Source: Camelus ferus (Eukaryota). From it: a stretch of DNA of 64,000 nt. The position numbers and the translations under genes were made by a program. Shown piece after piece: positions 6,607 to 56,258 of the stretch (the stretch's first letter is position 1; each line of letters begins with the position of its first letter). Under the pieces are notes generated by a model. It saw only the letters and a list, made by a program, of their open reading frames with translations, was not told the DNA's origin and did not search any database. The stretch spans positions 3,038,001 to 3,102,000 of the forward strand of contig NC_045713.1 in assembly GCF_009834535.1 (NCBI RefSeq), given 5' to 3'.

Positions 6607-7121
6607 TGTTACAGCTCGGTGTTATAGCTCAGCTGTGACAACAACCTGGATCCAGGAGAGAGACCAAGCATCACTTGGAGAGCTGGAGAATTCAGGTTTA
6701 TTACGCCAGCAGGCCCAAAGGAGTTAACACTCCAAGCTCTGGACCTAGTCTATAGGTTTACACAGGCTTTTATAGGCTGCCAGTTTACACTTTGCAACAT
6801 CATATGCAAATAAGGCATAACAAAAGTTGACTAATTAGGAACAAGCTTTGCAGAAACAGACCAATCAGGAGGGAGAGAAATAACCAATCAGGAGTGAGGG
6901 AAATGGACCAATCAGGAGGGAGAGAAATAACCAACCAGGAGTGAGGGAAATAACCAATCAGGAGTGAGCTCAGGGAACCAACAGAATTTTAGGGGTAAGT
7001 AAGCTGTTTTGGAGGCAAAATGAGATAGAGCCTCTGGGCCAGGGAACCGGATGGTGCTGGCACAAGAGTAGTGGCCCTGCCTGGGGGTCCTGCTGGTCCT
7101 TTTATGGGGCTTCCCGCCTCA
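6607..7121 (-). mobile_element. Solo ERV1-class LTR (artiodactyl type)
   Basis: TG...CA termini (tgttacagc at 6607, gcctca at 7121); minus-strand AATAAA (tttatt ~6699), TATAAAA (ttttata ~6767) and multiple CCAAT boxes in the expected U3-R-U5 order. TSD not clear. Confidence 0.8.
6860..6983. repeat. 23-24 bp tandem array of CCAAT boxes inside LTR U3
   Basis: CCAAT/CCAAC at 6861, 6884, 6908, 6931, 6954, 6978; unit accaatcaggag(g/t)gag(a/g)gaaata. Confidence 0.92.
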
Positions 7122-10344: not shown

Positions 10345-10838
10345 TGTGGGAGGCAGAAGATTATGCCCCCAANNNNNNNNNNNNNNNNNNNNNNNNNNNN
10401 NNNNNNNNNNNNNNNNNNNNNNNNNNNNNNNNNNNNNNNNNNNNNNNNNNNNNNNNNNNNNNNNNNNNNNNNNNNNNNNNNNNNNNNNNNNNNNNNNNNN
10501 NNNNNNNNNNGAGTTTGGACTGTGGGGAGGATCAGAAGTCAGGAGGGTCTGGGTAAAGATGTGACAACAGAAGCATAGGGTTTAGAGGAGGTTTGAAGAT
10601 GCTTGCACTGCTGGCTTTGAAGATGCAGGAAGGGGCTGTGAGCCAAAGAAGAAGCCAGTCTCAAGAAACTGGAAAAAGCAAAGAAATAAATTCTTCCTTC
10701 GAGCCTTCAGAAAGAACACAGACTTGCCAACATGCTAGTTTAGCCCAGTGGAACTTATGACCTCCAGACCTGTGAGAGAATACATTTTGTTGTATGAAGC
10801 CACTGAGTTTGTGGTAATTGGTTGCAGCCAACACAGCA
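10345..10838 (+). mobile_element. MaLR MLT1C/D LTR containing an assembly gap
   Basis: Starts tgtgggaggcagaagattatgccccc; has ctggctttgaagatg and ggaaaaagcaaagaaataaattcttcc; ends ttgtggtaattggttgcagc. Confidence 0.8.
10373..10510. other. Assembly gap (138 N)
   Basis: Run of N. Confidence 1.
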
Positions 10839-22280: not shown

Positions 22281-22780
22281 TTTGTTTTTAATTGAAATAT
22301 AGTTGATTCACAATGCTGTGTTAGTTTCTGGTGTACAGCACAGAGATTCAGTTATACCATATATATTCTTTTTTATATTTTGTATTATAGTTTATTACAA
22401 GCTATTGAAGGTAGTTCCCTGTGCTATAGAGTAGGACTTGTTGTTTATCTATTTTTTACATAATAATTTGTATCTGCTGCCCCAAACTCTTAATTTATCC
22501 CTGCCCCCTCCTTTCCCTCCTGGTAACAATGAGTTTGTTTTCTGTGTCTGTGAGTCTCTTTCTCTTTTGTAAATAAGTTCATTGTGTCATTTTTTTTTGA
22601 TTCTACATATAAGTGATATCATATGATATTTGTCTTTCTCTGTCTGACTTACTTCATGTAGTATGATAATCTCTATGTCCATCCATGTTGATGCAAATGG
22701 CATTACTTTATTCTCTTTTATGGCTGAGTAGTATTTCACTGTATGCCTATACCACAACTTCTTTATCCAGTCAATTGATG
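22281..22780 (-). mobile_element. Cetartiodactyl L1 3'UTR (L1_Art-like)
   Basis: aattgaaatatagttgattcacaatgctgtgttagtttctggtgtacagc...tccatccatgttgatgcaaatggc. Confidence 0.88.
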
Positions 22781-28679: not shown

Positions 28680-30258
28680 TCTCTTCTTTAGGTGTCCTCT
28701 CATCACCTGTGTTTCTGATTCGTCTTTTTCTTCCCATCATCCCTCCTGAACCAGTGCTACTCAAAGTGTGGTCCAGGCTTAGCAGCATCTTCACCACCTG
28801 GGAGCTGCTTAGAAATGACAAGCATATGACCACCTAAACACACTCCCCTCCTGCAATGATCACGTCCTCTTCAGCACTGATTTTCTCCCTTTCCAAAGCC
28901 ATTACCATCACCTTTAAAGATACTGCCAAAGCTCTTAAAAAACACTCTCCCTAGGTCCTGCCTTCTCCTTCAGCTACTGCCCCATATCCCTGCTCCCTTC
29001 CATAGCCCAACTCCTCAATGACATTGTCTGTATCTGCTGTCCCCACTTCTTTGTCTCACGGTTTCTCTCCAATTCACAACAATCAGATTTTTGTCTTCAC
29101 TACCCATGGAAACACTCTTGCCAGAGTCAGCAACAGATCCTTCTCTCTGTTCATGTGACTGAAGATTCGGCAGCACGTGACACATTTCCTCACCCCTTCT
29201 GTCTGGAATGACTGTCTTCCCGGGGGCTCTAAGTCACTGCGTTCGCCTGGTTTCCCTCTGACCTCAGCATGGCTCCTGGGTTCTTTAAGTTTCAGCTTTG
29301 CAACCATGCGCCCCCCAGAACCCAAAGACTTTGGTTTCCTGGAAGCTGCCTAGGGGTCGCGGGAATAACGCCACTTGGCATCGCTTCTTTTTCCGTTGAG
29401 ATGTAATTGACAGGTAACATGGTATCAGGTTCAGGAGTACAACGCAGTGATTCAGTATTTGTGAATTTTGTGAAATAATCAGCACAATATGTCTCGACAT
29501 GGTTACACATTTTTTTTCTTGTGTTGAGGACTTCTAAGATCTTTTAAGATGACTCTCTTAGCAACTTTCAAATATAAAATGCAGTATTATTAATGATAGT
29601 CATCATGCTGTACATTACATCCCCATGATTTACTTATTTTATAATTGGAAGTGTTACCTTTTGACCCCCTTCATCCATTTGCCTACCCCGCCCCAGCTCC
29701 CATCTCTGGCAACCACCAGACTGTTGCTACTCATCACTTACTCTGTATCTATGAGATATATATATTTTTAGATTCCACATATAAGTGAGATCATATGGTA
29801 TTTGTCTTTCTCTGTCTGACTCATTTCACTTAGTGTAATACCCTCCAAGTCCACACGTGCAAATGGCAAGGGTAGTCTTACTAAAGCCAGGCCACCTTTG
29901 CTCTGCCTCTTACTTAGAGGTTTGAGGATCTTTCTGCAGATCTTTGCATGGCTCTCAGATCTTGTGGCTCATTCTTTCACTTGATTACGGTCTCTGCTCA
30001 AAAGTGACTTTCTCAGACCTTTCCTGATCACCCTCAAGAGATCAGCACCCTCCCTGCTCCACAACTATCTGTATCTGTCTCATCACTCTGCCTTATTGCC
30101 TTCATAGCATCTTTACTACCTTACAGTGTGTAGCAGGTCTCCCCCCTCGCCTAGAATGTAAGTTCCCTGAGGGCGGGACCTTGGTTTGCTCACGGCTGTA
30201 TCTCCAGCGACCACAATGGTCCTGATGAACAGCACTTGCTCAGTGAATGAATGAATGA
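28680..30258 (+). mobile_element. L2a LINE, interrupted by a MER5A piece (~28750-28815) and an L1
   Basis: RT-region remnant (ggcagcacgtgacac), 3' end tagaatgtaagttccctgagggcggg and (tgaa)n tail. Confidence 0.75.
29390..29870 (-). mobile_element. L1MA9-like 3'UTR inserted in L2a
   Basis: caactttcaaatataaaatgcagtattattaatgatagtcatcatgctgtacattacatcccc...tagattccacatataagtgagatc. Confidence 0.85.
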
Positions 30259-34732: not shown

Positions 34733-35024
34733 NNNNNNNNNNNNNNNNNNNNNNNNNNNNNNNNNNNNNNNNNNNNNNNNNNNNNNNNNNNNNNNNNNNN
34801 NNNNNNNNNNNNNNNNNNNNNNNNNNNNNNNNNNNNNNNNNNNNNNNNNNNNNNNNNNNNNNNNNNNNNNNNNNNNNNNNNNNNNNNNNNNNNNNNNNNN
34901 NNNNNNNNNNNNNNNNNNNNNNNNNNNNNNNNNNNNNNNNNNNNNNNNNNNNNNNNNNNNNNNNNNNNNNNNNNNNNNNNNNNNNNNNNNNNNNNNNNNN
35001 NNNNNNNNNNNNNNNNNNNNNNNN
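34733..35024. other. Assembly gap (292 N)
   Basis: Run of N. Confidence 1.
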
Positions 35025-38054: not shown

Positions 38055-38429
38055 CTTCCTATTGAAGTATAGTTCATTTACAATGTGTTAGTTTCTGATG
38101 TACAGCGTAGTGGTTTAGTTGTGCATACATACATAAATATATTCTTTTTCATTATGGGCAATTACGAGGTATTGAATATAGTTCCCTGTGTTATACAGTA
38201 GGACCTTATTTATCCATTTTCTATATAGTAGGTAGTATCTGCTAATCCCAAACTCCTAATTTATCCCTCCTCCTCCTTTCCCCTTTGGTAACCATAAGTT
38301 TGTTTTGTGTGTCTGTGAGTCTATTTCTTTTTGTAAACAAGTTCATCTGTCTCATTTTCTTAGATTCCACATATAAGAGATGTCATATGATACTCGTCTT
38401 TCTCTGTCTGACTTACTTCACTTAGTGTG
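38055..38429 (-). mobile_element. Cetartiodactyl L1 3'UTR running into a gap
   Basis: Same family as 22281-22780 (attgaagtatagttcatttacaatgtgttagtttctg...). Confidence 0.88.
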
Positions 38430-38619
38430 NNNNNNNNNNNNNNNNNNNNNNNNNNNNNNNNNNNNNNNNNNNNNNNNNNNNNNNNNNNNNNNNNNNNNNN
38501 NNNNNNNNNNNNNNNNNNNNNNNNNNNNNNNNNNNNNNNNNNNNNNNNNNNNNNNNNNNNNNNNNNNNNNNNNNNNNNNNNNNNNNNNNNNNNNNNNNNN
38601 NNNNNNNNNNNNNNNNNNN
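38430..38619. other. Assembly gap (190 N)
   Basis: Run of N. Confidence 1.
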
Positions 38620-40510: not shown

Positions 40511-40600
40511 TTTTTTTTTTTTAATGAAGGTACTGGGTATTGAACCCAGGACCTTGTGCATGCTAAGCATATGGTCTACCCCTGAGCTAAACACCTCCCC
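40511..40600 (-). mobile_element. tRNA-Ala-derived SINE (camelid Vic-1 type)
   Basis: Minus strand GGGGAGGTGTTTAGCTCAGGGGTAGACCATATGCTTAGCATGCACAAGGTCCTGGGTTCAATACCCAGTACC plus A12 tail; A box, intact B box GGTTCAATACC, AGC anticodon loop remnant. Confidence 0.88.
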
Positions 40601-40674: not shown

Positions 40675-40771
40675 TTTTTTTTCGGAGGGGGGGGGTAGAG
40701 GCACTGGGGATTTAATCCAGGACCTTATACATTCTAAGCATCCACTCTACCACTGAGCTATACCCACCACC
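40675..40771 (-). mobile_element. Second tRNA-Ala-derived Vic-1-type SINE
   Basis: Minus strand GGGTATAGCTCAGTGGTAGAGTGGATGCTTAGAATGTATAAGGTCCTGGATTAAATCCCC plus C-rich linker and A tail; B box degenerate. Confidence 0.85.
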
Positions 40772-41314: not shown

Positions 41315-41486
41315 NNNNNNNNNNNNNNNNNNNNNNNNNNNNNNNNNNNNNNNNNNNNNNNNNNNNNNNNNNNNNNNNNNNNNNNNNNNNNNNNNNNNNN
41401 NNNNNNNNNNNNNNNNNNNNNNNNNNNNNNNNNNNNNNNNNNNNNNNNNNNNNNNNNNNNNNNNNNNNNNNNNNNNNNNNNNNNNN
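41315..41486. other. Assembly gap (172 N)
   Basis: Run of N. Confidence 1.
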
Positions 41487-47514: not shown

Positions 47515-47662
47515 NNNNNNNNNNNNNNNNNNNNNNNNNNNNNNNNNNNNNNNNNNNNNNNNNNNNNNNNNNNNNNNNNNNNNNNNNNNNNNNNNNNNNN
47601 NNNNNNNNNNNNNNNNNNNNNNNNNNNNNNNNNNNNNNNNNNNNNNNNNNNNNNNNNNNNNN
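47515..47662. other. Assembly gap (148 N)
   Basis: Run of N. Confidence 1.
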
Positions 47663-49435: not shown

Positions 49436-50389
49436 TAGAACATTAACAACAATTAGGGAAACTCAGGCCACATAAAATGCCTGATTTCCTTAAGGTGGCT
49501 GACCCTAAGAGCTCCTAGTTACACACAAAGGAACAAGTCCTGAGGAATGAAAAGCCAATGGGAACTTTTGACCCCAAATTTACTACTTTGAAATAAATCT
49601 GTAAATTGCAGTTTTCTGTTTGTTGGTTTCGTTCAGGAAATCAGAAACTAATCTAGGTATTTTAGGCAGGATGGGATTTAACTAAGTGAATGAATCAGAA
49701 CCCCATCCATCCCTCCCTCCCCACCAACAGAAATGCCAGTAAATTTGATGTTAATACTATGATTCTGACTTTTGTGAATACGAGAAGAATGGCGAAAAAG
49801 AGAAATCTGGGGGATTTAATGGACAGGACATCTGCCCTATGGTTACCATTTTCCTCCAGGTAACATTATAGGTGAGCAGTAAATGTTCACTCAATTAATG
49901 ACTCGTCAGCAACAACATGAAGCAAGAACAAACTGAGTTTAAGAAACAGAGATAAATCAAAGGGTGGCACAGAGACTTTAGAAGAGACATTTTTGTAATG
50001 GAGACTTTTGACAAATAAAGGAGCCTCATTGCTGTTTTTCAGGGGAGTCAGGAGGTCAGGAGAATTGGGGGCCACCAGCCAGCATGTCCTGCAGAATGTC
50101 CAGGTGTTGCCTGGGCAGAGCTGAAGGTTCAGGAACCCCAGGTCCTGGAAGGAGGCTGCAGTCATTTCCCCACCATGCAGAGTATCCCAACTGTCCACTA
50201 AGCTAAGGACATTAATAGGGGTTACCTAGACCCTTTCCTGCCTTGGGCATTCTAGTTATTTCTCCTGTATGAACCCCCTGTGGACTCTGAGTTGACTTTC
50301 CCCGGAAACCCCAGTCTGGTATTGCCATGGGAGAAGAGAAGTATCCTCTACACTCTCTGCCTGCCAGGGAGCAGCGTACGAATCCAGTA

Positions 50390-50526
50390 GAATCAGGGCC
50401 CCATCCTTATGACCTCACTTAACCTTAATTACTTCCTTAGAGACCTCACCTCCAAAAACAGCCATACTGGGGGTTACAACTTCTGCATATGGGTTTTGGA
50501 GGGTCAGAAACATTCAGTCCGTAATA
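50390..50526 (-). mobile_element. MaLR MST/MLT1A LTR 5' fragment
   Basis: gggccccatccttatgacctcacttaaccttaattacttcc...acattcagtccgtaa. Confidence 0.8.
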
Positions 50527-50801
50527 GTAGGCTTCTCCTTCATTCTAATAGGAGAAGAACTCAAGGCACTATTCACCATCTCCCCCATAAACAATCCAGA
50601 GTCCCATCAGGGGGCAAACCAGATGGCATAAATGAGGTGTTCATGCGTATCCATGAAAAAGGTCTTTTCCCCAACTTCAAGGGCACCTCCACTTGAAAGC
50701 ATCATGCCTGTCCCAGAGTAGGTGATCATTAATGTTTAATACATGTATGTGTGTCACTCAGCCCAGAACATTGCTTGGACTGTCAAGGTTCAGATGAAGG
50801 G

Positions 50802-50875
50802 AGGGATCTTAACCAAAGGAAGGGATCTTAACCAAAGTGTCTTTAAACAGAAGGGCAGGATGCTGCTGGGTACCA
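50802..50875 (+). other. Locally templated insertion (tandem duplication plus two exact copies of downstream sequence)
   Basis: agggatcttaaccaaag at 50802-50818 and 50821-50837; 50834-50852 equals 53485-53503 (19 nt); 50849-50875 equals 52988-53014 (27 nt). Confidence 0.85.
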
Positions 50876-51679
50876 TTCACAGCCCAGAAAGACTTGAGAG
50901 TCGGCAGTGAATTATTTCAAATTGTGCACCTTATAAAGGTGGATTCAAGGGAGAGATTATCCAAACCCACCTGCACTTTGCAAGTTTGAGAAAGGGCCAT
51001 CATTTTCTGACAAATCTAGGTGGAGGTACAGGCAGGATGGTTGTCTCAAGGACATGTTGATTTCATAATTGCATCGGGGTTGAGAAAAAAAAAAGGGGTC
51101 CTCGGTCATGAATTATTAGTTTCCAATGAAATGCAAAATACACAGATTATTCTTTCCTAGGATCAAAATCTGACTTTGACTTTCTCCCCCTAAATTGTTA
51201 AAGGCGAGTGAAAGATTGAGGTGATAGGAGGAAATGAGGAGACGTGGAATCACCTGGAAGGATTCAGCAAAGAGAAGCAGCAGGCCACTGTGGGAAAGCT
51301 CATATTGACTCACTGTTCTACCATTTACTGTTTTCACGACCCTGGTCAAGGAATTAAAATGTCCATGACACTCATTTTGTAAAAGTTGATGTTGCCTTCC
51401 CCGCTGGGTTGTGGTAAGGATCAAATCCAGTAATTTTTCTGCAGTGCTTAGCATCATGCCTGGGACTTCATAAGCCACCTATAAATGTTAGTTCTATCTG
51501 AATATGTAATAACACAAATCATCTGATATACTTTTCAGAGCATGGCTGTGGAGATGGTACAAATTAGGACGCTGAGAGGGCAATTTGCTCGTTACATGAT
51601 CAGTGAGACCAGTCTGTCCTCCAAATGTATTGGTTTGAAATAAATCAGTTAGGTTTCAGTCTAAGTGATATGCTTAGAT

Positions 51680-52980
51680 ACAGGTTTGCTATTGTGAGTT
51701 TAGTCAGAGACCCAGAAACCACTCTAGATGTTGTTGTCGGAGAGAAATTTAACACAGGGAATTAGATGCTGAATAGAAAAAAACCTCACTCTTTCTTCCT
51801 GGGTCTCTCCATTACCCCCACCCCCTACCCCCCACCCCCCAACTAATAGCACACTCCCAATTCTGATATCAAACGTGTGGGACTTTTTTTCCCCACCAAA
51901 CAAATTTCTGTGACATCAGCTGGGTGTCCTGCAGTTTAACTCCATTCTATGTGGAGATAGGGTCAGATCCCACAGGCTTAGTCCTACAACATTGCCCCCC
52001 TGCCCCTCCTTCCGATATCAATTGCAAAACCAGGTGGTCACCTCTGCTTCTGGCCATTGGGGCTATAAATTGCATTCTCATGACTGACTGCCCCCACCCC
52101 TCAGGTTCGACTGATTTGCTACAGCAGCTCACAGAACTCATGAAAATAGCTACTTTTACCAGTTTATTAAAGGACATGATAAAGGATTCAGATGAACAGC
52201 CAGATGGAGATACTTAGGCTGTGGTCAGGGAAAGTCCCGCGGGTGGGCAGGAGCTTCTGTCCCATGGAGTCAGGATGCGTCACCCTCCCGGTGCACAGAT
52301 GTGTCCCCCAACCCAGAAACTCTCTGAACTCCATACTACTGGGATTTTATGGAGGCTTTCTCATCCAGGCAAAATCAGTTATTGTCTCCATTTCCAGCCC
52401 CTCTACCCTTTTTGGAGAATGGGGGGTCGGGCTGAAAATTCCAAGTTTCTAATCACAGCTTGATCTTTCTGGTGACCAGCCCCCATCCAGGAGCCATACA
52501 GGAGACCACCCAGAGTCCCCTCATTAGAACAAAAGATGCTCCCAGCAATCTTATTTAGGAATTGACAGGGATCTTGGAAACTTTTTCAGGTATAGGGACA
52601 AAGGCCAAATATATGTTTCATATTATAAATCACAGCATCACAGGTGCGTCATGGAAGTTTGGCCAAGCTAGGAATGCAAACATCAGGGAAAATCAACATC
52701 GACCCCAGGAAATCAGGCAGTTGTAGGAATTGCAAGAAGCAGCCACCCAGAGCAGGTGATTCATAGGAGAATGCTTGGGAACCACTGCAAGACATCACAC
52801 AGCCTTCTGCTGGACTCTGTGCACCTGCCCACCTACGTCCAAGGACTACAATTGTTCCTGCTTCTCTCCCAACTTCCACATCTGATGTGAGTTCCTGTCA
52901 CTGGCAGAATCAAAATAATCCCACTGACAAGGGGGCCTGTGAAATGTAGCTTTTGGGCTCCTAGCAGCGGCACTACATGG
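51680..52980 (-). mobile_element. LTR33-like ERVL LTR split by MER21
   Basis: cagaaaccactctagatg...tttaacacagggaatt before 51770; ttccacatctgatgtgagttcc...ggcagaa...gaaatgtagc after 52642. Confidence 0.6.
51770..52642 (-). mobile_element. Full-length MER21B-like LTR
   Basis: TG...CA termini; 5-bp TSD gatgc (51765-51769) / ggtgc (52643-52647); tttatt at 52163. Confidence 0.88.
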
Positions 52981-53019
52981 AGAGCTTAGAAGGGCAGGAT
53001 GCTGCTGGGTACCAAGGAA

Positions 53020-53270
53020 AAATCGATCCTCATTATTCACGGATCCTGTATTTACAAATTCACCCACTGGCTCACTAAAATTTATCTGTAACCTCCCGAA
53101 TCAATAATTATTCATAGTACTTTTGCAGTTGTTCACAGCCATATGAAGAGCAGCAAAAAAATTGAGTAGCCCAACATATACTTTCCCAGCTTGATGCTGA
53201 ACAACAAGCAATCTGTCTTGTTTCAGCTCTCAAACCATGAACAAGGGTGCTTTCCATGATCTATTTAATA

Positions 53271-53321
<51 letters not shown>

Positions 53322-53669
53322 CTTTTTTTGTTGGTGATTTTGCTGTTAAATATGGCCCCCAGGCAGTGTTGAAGTGCTATCTGGTGTAGGAGCATCCAAG
53401 GAGGCTGTGATGTGCTGGATAAGCATGGTCCAGGCATGAGTTTTGTGCTGTTCTACGGTAATGAATCAACAGTCTCTATTAACAAAAGTGTCTTTAAACA
53501 GAAACACGCATAAAGCAAGGTTCTGTATTGATTGGGTGATGGATATATGACCAGAGACTTGCAGGAACCTAACTGTACTTGTGCTGGGAGCAGTGAGTCA
53601 GTCTTTGCTAATTCAGTGCTTTCTGTGACTCTGCAGTAACTACCACAAATGGCTAGTGAGAATCAAGTA
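53020..53669 (+). mobile_element. Tigger4/Zombi-type TcMar DNA transposon (nonautonomous)
   Basis: tcgatcctcattattcac...ctcactaaaatttat...gtgtctttaaacagaaacac...gcaggaacctaac...gagaatc. Confidence 0.82.
53272..53322. repeat. (GT)20(GC)3 alternating purine-pyrimidine tract
   Basis: Direct reading. Confidence 0.95.
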
Positions 53670-56258
53670 ATATTTAGCGCACGTGGCCCCATCCTTTGAT
53701 GGCTTAGGACCTCCTTGTGAGAATATCCAGTTAAGAAGGGAAGCGGTTCAGCATGCTTTGACATACTTCAGATCATCCCAAATTCACATGAAAAGCTGGT
53801 GTTGAAATCGAGACTTTAGAATTCCCAGCATGGTTTCCCCAAGTCTACGCTCCTCTTGTAGATTCTTCTTCTTTCCTTTTCTTTTTTTTTTTTTAAAACA
53901 ACTTAGAAGATTAAGCAACTGCCTGAACCGCCAATGTTTTTCAAACTTAAAAAACGACTAAGATATAAGAATTCATGCTGACCTTGGGGGAGGGAAGGAA
54001 ATATCAGGTTTAATCCACTGTCCTCAGGCAGTAAGTTTGACCTTGTTTTACATATGAGACACCCAAAGCCCACAAAGGTTAAGAGGTTTGCCTGAGGCCA
54101 CCGTGAGGTCAGAAAACCTGCCTACTTCAGTGTCTTTCCTTTTTGCTTGGTTGCTTTAAAATGCAGTTCAATTGCTTGTAAAGTAAGGAAGTTGAACTGG
54201 CTGATCTCTGAGGTCTCTTACAAATCTGAAATTCCATGACTTGGTGATTCTGGCATTCACTGAAGGCTTAAAATGGTTCAGCGCTCTGCTTGGGGCTGGG
54301 GCTGACCAGGTGAGGGAAGATACACAACAGAAGACACTGAATATGCCCCAGAGAGTCTGCGTGTGCAAACAAGGCACAGACAGAAACATTTAAATAATAC
54401 TGCATGGCATCCTTTATGCCTTTGAGCAAGTGACACCTCCTCCAGGAAGCCAGCCTTGATTTCCACCCTCTTCTTATTTGGAAATTATTCTGTGATCTTA
54501 ACTGCTATAGCATTAACCTGATCGTCTCCTTAATACTAATTTATTGACATTTATTGATTGCATATTACAATCATTGCATTTTACATAGTGTTAAAGTTAA
54601 TCCTCACAGCAGCTCTATGAGGTGTTCTTAGTAGCTTCGTTTTACACATGAGGATATTATGTTTTCTCTTCTGATGAACCTCTTGCCATTACAGCTTCTG
54701 GCCATATCCTTCCTGAGATACTATCTTTCCTGTGATTTTTATCATTGAGTATCTTCTGGTCTTTCCCTACACTCTCTGTCCATTACTTTTCCATTTTCAA
54801 ATTTTAAAAAATTTATTTTGATCATCTTTATTTAGGTTTAATTGATTATATAATAAACTGCTGATGTTTAAAGTACACAATTTTATGAACTTTCTCATAT
54901 ACCTGAGAAACCATTGCCACAATCAAGATGATGAATGTACCTATCACCCCTGAGTTTTTGTGTGTCCAAGTGTCCCATTGTATTCTCCACCCATCTCTCC
55001 CCTCACTAATCTGCTTTCAGTCACTGAGTTGAGGCAGTACTTTGTATTAGAATTTTATATAAATGGAGTTTCATACACTATGTAGTCTTTTTTTGTGTGA
55101 CTTCTTTCAATCAGCAGAACAATTTTGAAATTCATTCTTGTTGTGTAAATCAGTAGTGAATTTTTTTATATTGCTAAGTAGCATTCTATTGAATGCCACA
55201 GTTCTACCACATCCTTGTCAGCACTTGGTACGGTCAGTCTTTTTAATTTTAGCCACTTTATTAGGTATGTAGTAGTACCACCTTGTGCTTTCAGTTTTCA
55301 TTGCCCTGGTGACTGATAATGTTGAACATATTTTCATGTGCTTATTTGCCAGCCTTACATATTCTTTGATGAAGTGTCTGATCAAAAAAATTGTTTTCTT
55401 TTAATTAAATGTTGAGTGTTCTTTCTATATTCTGGATGCAAGCACTTTATCAGATAGATGTTTGGCAAATATTTTATCCTAGTCTGTGGATTTTCTTAAT
55501 AGTGACTTTTGAAGAGAAGAAGTTTTCAATTTTGATAAAAGCCAGTTCATTAATTTGTTCTTTCATAGGAAGTGCTTTTGGTGTCATATCTAAGAATTCT
55601 CTGGGTAACAAAAATTCACAATGAATTTCTTCTGACTTCTAGACGTTTTACAGTTTTAAGTTTGATGTTTGGTTGTATGATCTATTTTGAGTTAATTTTT
55701 CTATATGCTGTGAAGTATGGATAAACATTCTTGTGTGTGTGGCAGGGAGGGACATTATCCCCTTATGAAAACATTATTTGTTGAAAAGACTATCATTTCT
55801 CAACTTAATTGCCTTTGTACCTTGGTTGTAAACCAATTCTCCATATATATGTAGATCTACTAACTCTTAAAATCAGATAATGTTAGTTGTCCAGCTTTCT
55901 TGTTCTTTTTCGTAGTTGTGTGACTATCTAAGGTGCTTTGCGTATCAATAGGAATTTTAGAATCAATTCATCAATTTCTACAAAAAGTTCCCAGGGCTTT
56001 CAATTGGAATTGCATTGATTGCATCAACTGAATTTGGGGGAAAATTGACATCTTAACAATATTAATTCTTCTGATCCATGAACACAATATGTTTCTCTGT
56101 TATTTAAGTCTTCTTTAATCTTACAGTGTTTTTTAGACTTTGATATACAGGTATTATGTGTGATGATGATTTTTGTATGTTGGTCTTATAGCCCTCAACC
56201 ATGCTAATCTCACCGAACAGGTTTTTAGAAATTTCATCCTATTTTTTACATCATCAGT

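Follow-up and report, generated by a model that had tools for sequence, protein, structure and literature searches.

A composite segment in the Camelus ferus genome: a probable germline insertion templated by two nearby downstream sites

Templated insertions and the locus at 50.8 kb

Template switching of low processivity during break repair has an established signature, in which tracts of copied sequence are short, synthesis is re-primed several times on homologies of 4-10 nt and a small duplication lies next to them. Polymerase-theta end joining (TMEJ) is active in germ cells and generates inserts whose sequence recurs unchanged in the vicinity of the break (PMC4490562). In the human germline, events of the MMBIR type have been described in which up to five templates were copied (PMC8421209), and the insertions referred to as MMB-TI are, as defined, inverted copies of a template located within 100 bp (Osia et al. 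2021, PMC8421209). Short-range template switch mutations (Walker et al. 2021, PMC7954356) arise when replication transiently switches to a nearby template and leave a mutation cluster or complex indel. Moreover, breaks may be patched by class 2 TSIPs, which are thought to be derived from RNA and which usually consist of single longer pieces from distant loci, often on other chromosomes (Onozawa & Aplan 2016, PMC5110952).

The locus described here lies at 50.8 kb of a 64-kb stretch of DNA (the window) and combines features of several of these systems. With TMEJ it shares the short bursts of copying (15 and 23 nt), the repeated re-annealing, the microhomology at the switch, the small tandem duplication and a heritable germline outcome; yet the templates of TMEJ inserts usually lie close to the break, whereas those used here are 2.1-2.7 kb off and only a 19-nt duplication is local. 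The resemblance to MMB-TI consists in a germline insertion that draws on several templates, shows microhomology wherever the template changes and is not accompanied by gross rearrangement, but the copies are direct and come from more than 2 kb away, i.e. they lie outside the configuration (inverted copy, template within 100 bp) by which MMBSearch recognizes MMB-TI. Direct copies from 2.1-2.7 kb are atypical for the TMEJ and MMB-TI reference sets alike. A switch to a nearby template that produces a complex indel is also what the short-range template switch mutations have in common with this locus. The events of that model reportedly involve one inverted copy each, taken from a distance of tens of bases, whereas the copies at 50.8 kb are serial, direct and spread over kilobases. 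Like class 2 TSIPs, the segment looks like a break patch with microhomology at its junctions and with neither poly(A) nor an L1-type target-site duplication; in contrast to them, it is made of two very short pieces from one 0.5-kb neighbourhood.

The locus adds a clean but ordinary example to a familiar class of mutation, and as a single, neutral-looking, non-coding event it leaves the knowledge of the pathways unchanged. Nevertheless, direct orientation, a template distance of kilobases and ordered use of the donors are found less often in catalogues than templated inserts of the local or inverted kind, and a clear multi-template scar in a non-model mammal is usable as a worked example. Independent recurrence of so complex an event is very improbable, and the scar may thus double as a rare genomic change with which to date splits in the lineage.

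Anatomy of the segment and its donors

The exact copies, their order and orientation and the microhomologies at the junctions can be read directly from the DNA. From left to right, a flank ending in ...GGGATCTTAACCAAAG is followed by a second copy of its final 19 nt with one mismatch, by 15 nt from a first and 23 nt from a second donor, by TTCA, by CAGCCCAGAA and finally by AGACTTGAG.... The local tandem duplication (50797..50837, + strand) is recognized by TRF with a period of 19, 2.2 copies and 95% matches; its sole mismatch is a G at 50801 versus an A at 50820, and the exact 17-mer AGGGATCTTAACCAAAG is present twice within it (50802-50818 and 50821-50837). The end of the second duplication copy (50819-50837) coincides with AAAG, the 4-nt start of the donor 1 copy (50834..50852, + strand), which is identical to 53485-53503 in 19 of 19 positions. 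AAAG (50834-50837) constitutes the entry microhomology, and the new bases are the 15 nt at 50838-50852, corresponding to 53489-53503. If a single mismatch is allowed, the match grows in the upstream direction to 25 nt (50828-50852 versus 53479-53503, by script and blastn), reading TTAAC[C/A]AAAGTGTCTTTAAACAGAA; the entry microhomology is then an imperfect 10-mer, TTAAC[C/A]AAAG, that reaches to 50828 and matches in 9/10 positions, the final four being exact.

The donor 2 copy (50849..50875, + strand) is identical to 52988-53014 in all 27 of its 27 positions and contributes 23 new bases (50853-50875, from 52992-53014). It has AGAA (50849-50852) in common with the donor 1 copy, and these four nucleotides represent the switch microhomology. 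At the right-hand junction (50875/50876) no microhomology was identifiable; TTCA (50876-50879) separates the donor 2 copy from the right one of two exact 10-nt direct repeats CAGCCCAGAA (50759..50768 and 50880..50889, both + strand) that bracket the segment. The sequence-only reading had reported the duplicated 17-mer, the 19-mer and 27-mer identities, the AAAG entry and the AGAA overlap; the three repeats were reproduced exactly by script and repeat finder at its coordinates, and both overlaps are present in the sequence. The 10-bp bracket that it had added as weaker evidence fared differently: both copies are exact where it had placed them, but a repeat of this kind occurs at chance level, with 31 comparable pairs of at least 10 nt within 150 nt in the window, and is not significant.

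Donor 1 (53479..53503, exact part 53485-53503) and donor 2 (52988..53014), both on the + strand and both found by script and blastn, are still in place at 53 kb, i.e. the sequence was copied and not cut. Both are located downstream of the recipient site in direct orientation, at distances of 2.65 kb (donor 1) and 2.1 kb (donor 2), and donor 2, oriented like its copy, precedes donor 1 by ~470 nt. Each donor runs on into sequence without counterpart at 50.8 kb, donor 1 on either side. The two pieces that adjoin at 50.8 kb are 470 nt apart at 53 kb, and their order is reversed. This arrangement, abutting pieces at one site and non-adjacent, reversed ones at the other, supports the assignment of the 50.8-kb site as recipient and of the 53-kb sites as donors, the direction that had been proposed from the letters, since one event at 50.8 kb is far more parsimonious than two at 53 kb. 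The reverse direction is disfavoured, as two independent events would have to split the chimera exactly at its junction.

Chance cannot account for the repeat arrangement and is effectively excluded. Under a uniform model, 2e-7 exact 27-mer pairs and 0.014 exact 19-mer pairs are expected in the 64-kb window. Only nine exact repeats of at least 17 nt that are not of low complexity are present there on either strand, three of which are this feature, the other six being accounted for by a 23/47-nt minisatellite at 6.85-6.97 kb and three LINE-1-like copies. For the 27-mer no other match was found in the 64-kb window, and blastn with 50500-51200 and 52500-54200 against the whole window yielded nothing further save the (GT)n tract described below. 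Likewise, local alignment of 50.65-51.0 kb with 52.8-53.75 kb on both strands revealed no collinear similarity outside the two blocks; an old duplication of, or gene conversion between, these regions was rejected, as only the two blocks are similar. If sequences were juxtaposed at random, an overlap of at least 4 nt at both junctions would have a joint P=1.5e-5, and upstream of AAAG 5/6 of the next bases match too (P=0.005).

Between the two donors sits a perfect (GT)20 microsatellite (53273..53313, TRF), bordered by a stretch of GC dinucleotides and then a T-run, which might be a source of replication stalling or non-B DNA near the templates. The 19-mer of donor 1, which the sequence-only reading had placed in a Tigger4 copy, may belong to an old element of the pogo/Tigger type, of which thousands of copies exist. 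A putative element of ~650 bp (about 53021-53669) has ends that may resemble pogo/Tigger termini; the alignment of its putative terminal inverted repeats scores 17, no better than shuffles, for which the mean is 14.3 and the maximum 24. If this assignment is right, donor 2 is located just beyond the 5' end of the element and donor 1 in its 3' part.

Template switching and competing explanations

Based on the evidence within the sequence itself, we consider it very probable that the segment is a germline templated insertion that arose by serial, microhomology-primed template switching. The sequence-only reading had suggested a composite insertion whose pieces came from a pair of sites shortly downstream and met at microhomologies, and both the exact copies and the improbability of the joint overlaps (P=1.5e-5) argue for it. 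The segment displays what characterizes templated insertions in general, namely identity to donors that are retained (19/19 and 27/27), microhomology beyond chance at the AAAG and AGAA junctions, and presence in the organism as judged from contig 31-mers in the 20 runs listed.

In the mechanism that we propose, a break near 50.82-50.88 kb would have undergone error-prone repair or restart, in the course of which a free 3' end of the top strand, ending in ...TTAACCAAAG, would have been extended in short bursts on several templates. This 3' end probably slipped back by 19 nt and recopied GAAGGGATCTTAACCAAAG; alternatively, given its one mismatch, the 19-nt tandem duplication could stem from an older, unrelated slippage. 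The end would then have annealed 2.65 kb downstream at TTAACAAAAG (9/10 bases, the last four exact), where 15 nt were copied, would have dissociated and re-annealed via AGAA 0.5 kb nearer to the break, where 23 nt were copied, and would finally have rejoined the right-hand side, possibly after one further short copy. Priming from the right end on a sister template would yield the same product; the direction of synthesis, just like the break and the enzyme, is inferred.

Small free fragments from the 53-kb region might instead have been ligated into the break by classical NHEJ, without any template switching. Breaks are known to take up genomic fragments (PMC5110952), and the right-hand junction, lacking clear microhomology, would be compatible with it. 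However, the fragments would be merely 15-27 nt long, and both internal junctions overlap by 4 nt, at the joint probability given above, with one overlap extending to 9/10, which argues for annealing-primed synthesis and not ligation, rendering fragment capture very unlikely. We give just as little credence to an RNA-templated patch of the class 2 TSIP kind, for which a reverse transcriptase would have jumped twice on a nascent downstream transcript before the cDNA patched the break. The donors share one strand, which a single transcript would demand, and class 2 TSIPs show microhomology and are devoid of target-site duplication and poly(A) (PMC5110952), but the pieces are very short and reversed in order, a local genomic tandem duplication is found at the junction, and the segment exhibits no poly(A), L1 endonuclease site or convincing target-site duplication. 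An L1-mediated insertion (class 1 TSIP) was rejected, as both ends of 50769-50879 lack an A- or T-run, a TTTT/A nick site is missing and the 10-nt repeat occurs at chance frequency.

The chimera could also be part of a dispersed repeat or of an older local duplication, in which case the matches would reflect shared ancestry, and the 19-mer, which may lie in a pogo/Tigger-like element with thousands of copies, would be in line with this. Nevertheless, on neither strand does similarity go beyond the blocks of 25 and 27 nt, the donors are not collinear with the copy, the 27-mer is without another match in the window, and perfect identity over 19 nt followed by abrupt divergence is not what independent copies of an ancient element would show; scans of metagenome and prokaryote contigs, although a weak test, were empty as well. 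Thus, shared ancestry hardly seems probable. Most remote is an artefact of assembly or polishing, or mere chance, a probability close to nil: 0.99 of the sampled words recur in each of the 20 independently assembled runs listed, and the number of 27-mer pairs expected by chance is negligible (2e-7).

As to the pathway behind the proposed template switching, the sequence fits polymerase-theta end joining and MMBIR/FoSTeS, and we assign them roughly equal weight, favouring the replicative version slightly. In the TMEJ version the left 3' tail would sample the bottom strand of the right-hand end after a resection of at least 2.7 kb, and the sequence of events, 53.49 kb to 52.99 kb to the junction, would represent successive trials that step back toward the break. 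The downstream location of the donors, their direct orientation and their use in an order that approaches the break would suit this version, and the alternative equally well. In the MMBIR/FoSTeS version the nascent strand at a stalled or collapsed fork would switch among nearby single-stranded templates. Our slight lean toward it is based on the kilobase distance of the templates and on the use of templates in the left flank, i.e. the 19-nt duplication and possibly the 10-mer.

More speculatively, and we think it rather doubtful, the locus might reflect end joining in the mammalian germline during which the resected strand of the partner end was probed by a 3' tail over at least 2.7 kb, in steps back toward the break. 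If this was the case, the microhomology search of TMEJ-like repair would not be limited to the terminal tens of bases, contrary to what cell-based assays indicate, and a genome-wide census of direct, same-side, distance-ordered donor series could be used to gauge resection lengths in the germline.

Occurrence, extent and age

The sequence-only reading had named an assembly chimera as one alternative to a genuine event, and this was checked by querying independent contig sets, one per run, with 111 31-mers sampled from 50300-51400. Among the runs listed, 20 runs (7 studies, 20 samples, two organism labels, one of which occurs once and the other nineteen times) each contain 0.99 of the 111 31-mers. 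By our arithmetic ~9 of the sampled words touch 50819-50875 or the junctions, so that a run without the insert would be expected to score ~0.92 or less; thus, the segment is not a chimera of the assembly. The insert is common or fixed under both organism labels, where contigs lose rare variants and the 31-mer shares are compatible with heterozygous empty alleles. A further listing limited to WGS runs contained additional runs of the more frequent label alone, and the stretch was shown in none of them. Exact scans of metagenome and prokaryote-genome contigs with the 23-nt donor-2 core and a 22-nt word from the left flank gave no match, a very weak test as host DNA is rare there.

The extent of the insert depends on which elements are counted. 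It could be 38 nt long if only the two distant pieces are included, or 57 nt (50819-50875) if the duplicated 19-mer is added. It could also comprise 73 nt (50819-50891), with a return on AAAG and with CAGCCCAGAA copied from 50759 as a fourth template; the candidate empty site would then join ...GGGATCTTAACCAAAG straight to ACTTGAGAGTCGG.... Finally, it could span 121 nt (50769-50889), the 10-mer being the mark of a staggered break; here, the candidate empty site would join ...GTCACTCAGCCCAGAA to AGACTTGAGAG... with a 10-nt duplication, and the first 50 nt (50769-50818) would have to be sourced from outside the window. The left CAGCCCAGAA could thus be a fourth template or one half of a staggered-break duplication, both readings resting on a repeat of chance-level frequency. 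For this very frequency the 10-bp bracket was rejected as a target-site duplication and kept only as an alternative boundary.

The lack of mismatches in the copies had been taken as a sign of a recent, lineage-specific event, a conclusion firmer than the identity warrants. The 42 nt without a mismatch correspond to a median age of 4-8 My and permit an age of up to ~16-36 My (95% upper bound), both copies being free to mutate and the rate being set at 2.2 to 1.0e-9 per site per year. A very recent or private variant is disfavoured by the presence of the segment in all 20 runs listed, under two organism labels.

Among the ORFs of at least 90 aa in the window, read by eye, no recognizable gene was seen, nor any recognizable coding ORF outside five N blocks, and a 120-aa ORF close to the segment (51116-51478, - strand) had no homologues in the protein collection. 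The N blocks (10373-10510, 34733-35024, 38430-38619, 41315-41486 and 47515-47662) measure 138-292 nt and are of exon-like sizes. The last of the three LINE-1-like copies mentioned above (22627-22656, 29768-29821 and 38360-38420), which have exact runs of 18-25 nt in common (TTAGATTCCACATATAAG..., GTCTTTCTCTGTCTGACTTACTTCA) and which look like LINE-1 3' ends, adjoins the N block at 38430. The minisatellite (6852-6968) consists of five copies of a 23-nt unit with 85% matches, is also described by a period of 47 with 2.4 copies and 93% matches, and includes CCAAT-like ACCAATCAGGAG motifs. Two tRNA-like sequences are located ~100 nt apart on the - strand, one at 40525-40598, called by ARAGORN as tRNA-Ala(AGC), and one at 40696-40767, matching the Rfam tRNA model with 38 bits; they could be a pair of tRNA genes or the heads of tRNA-derived SINEs.
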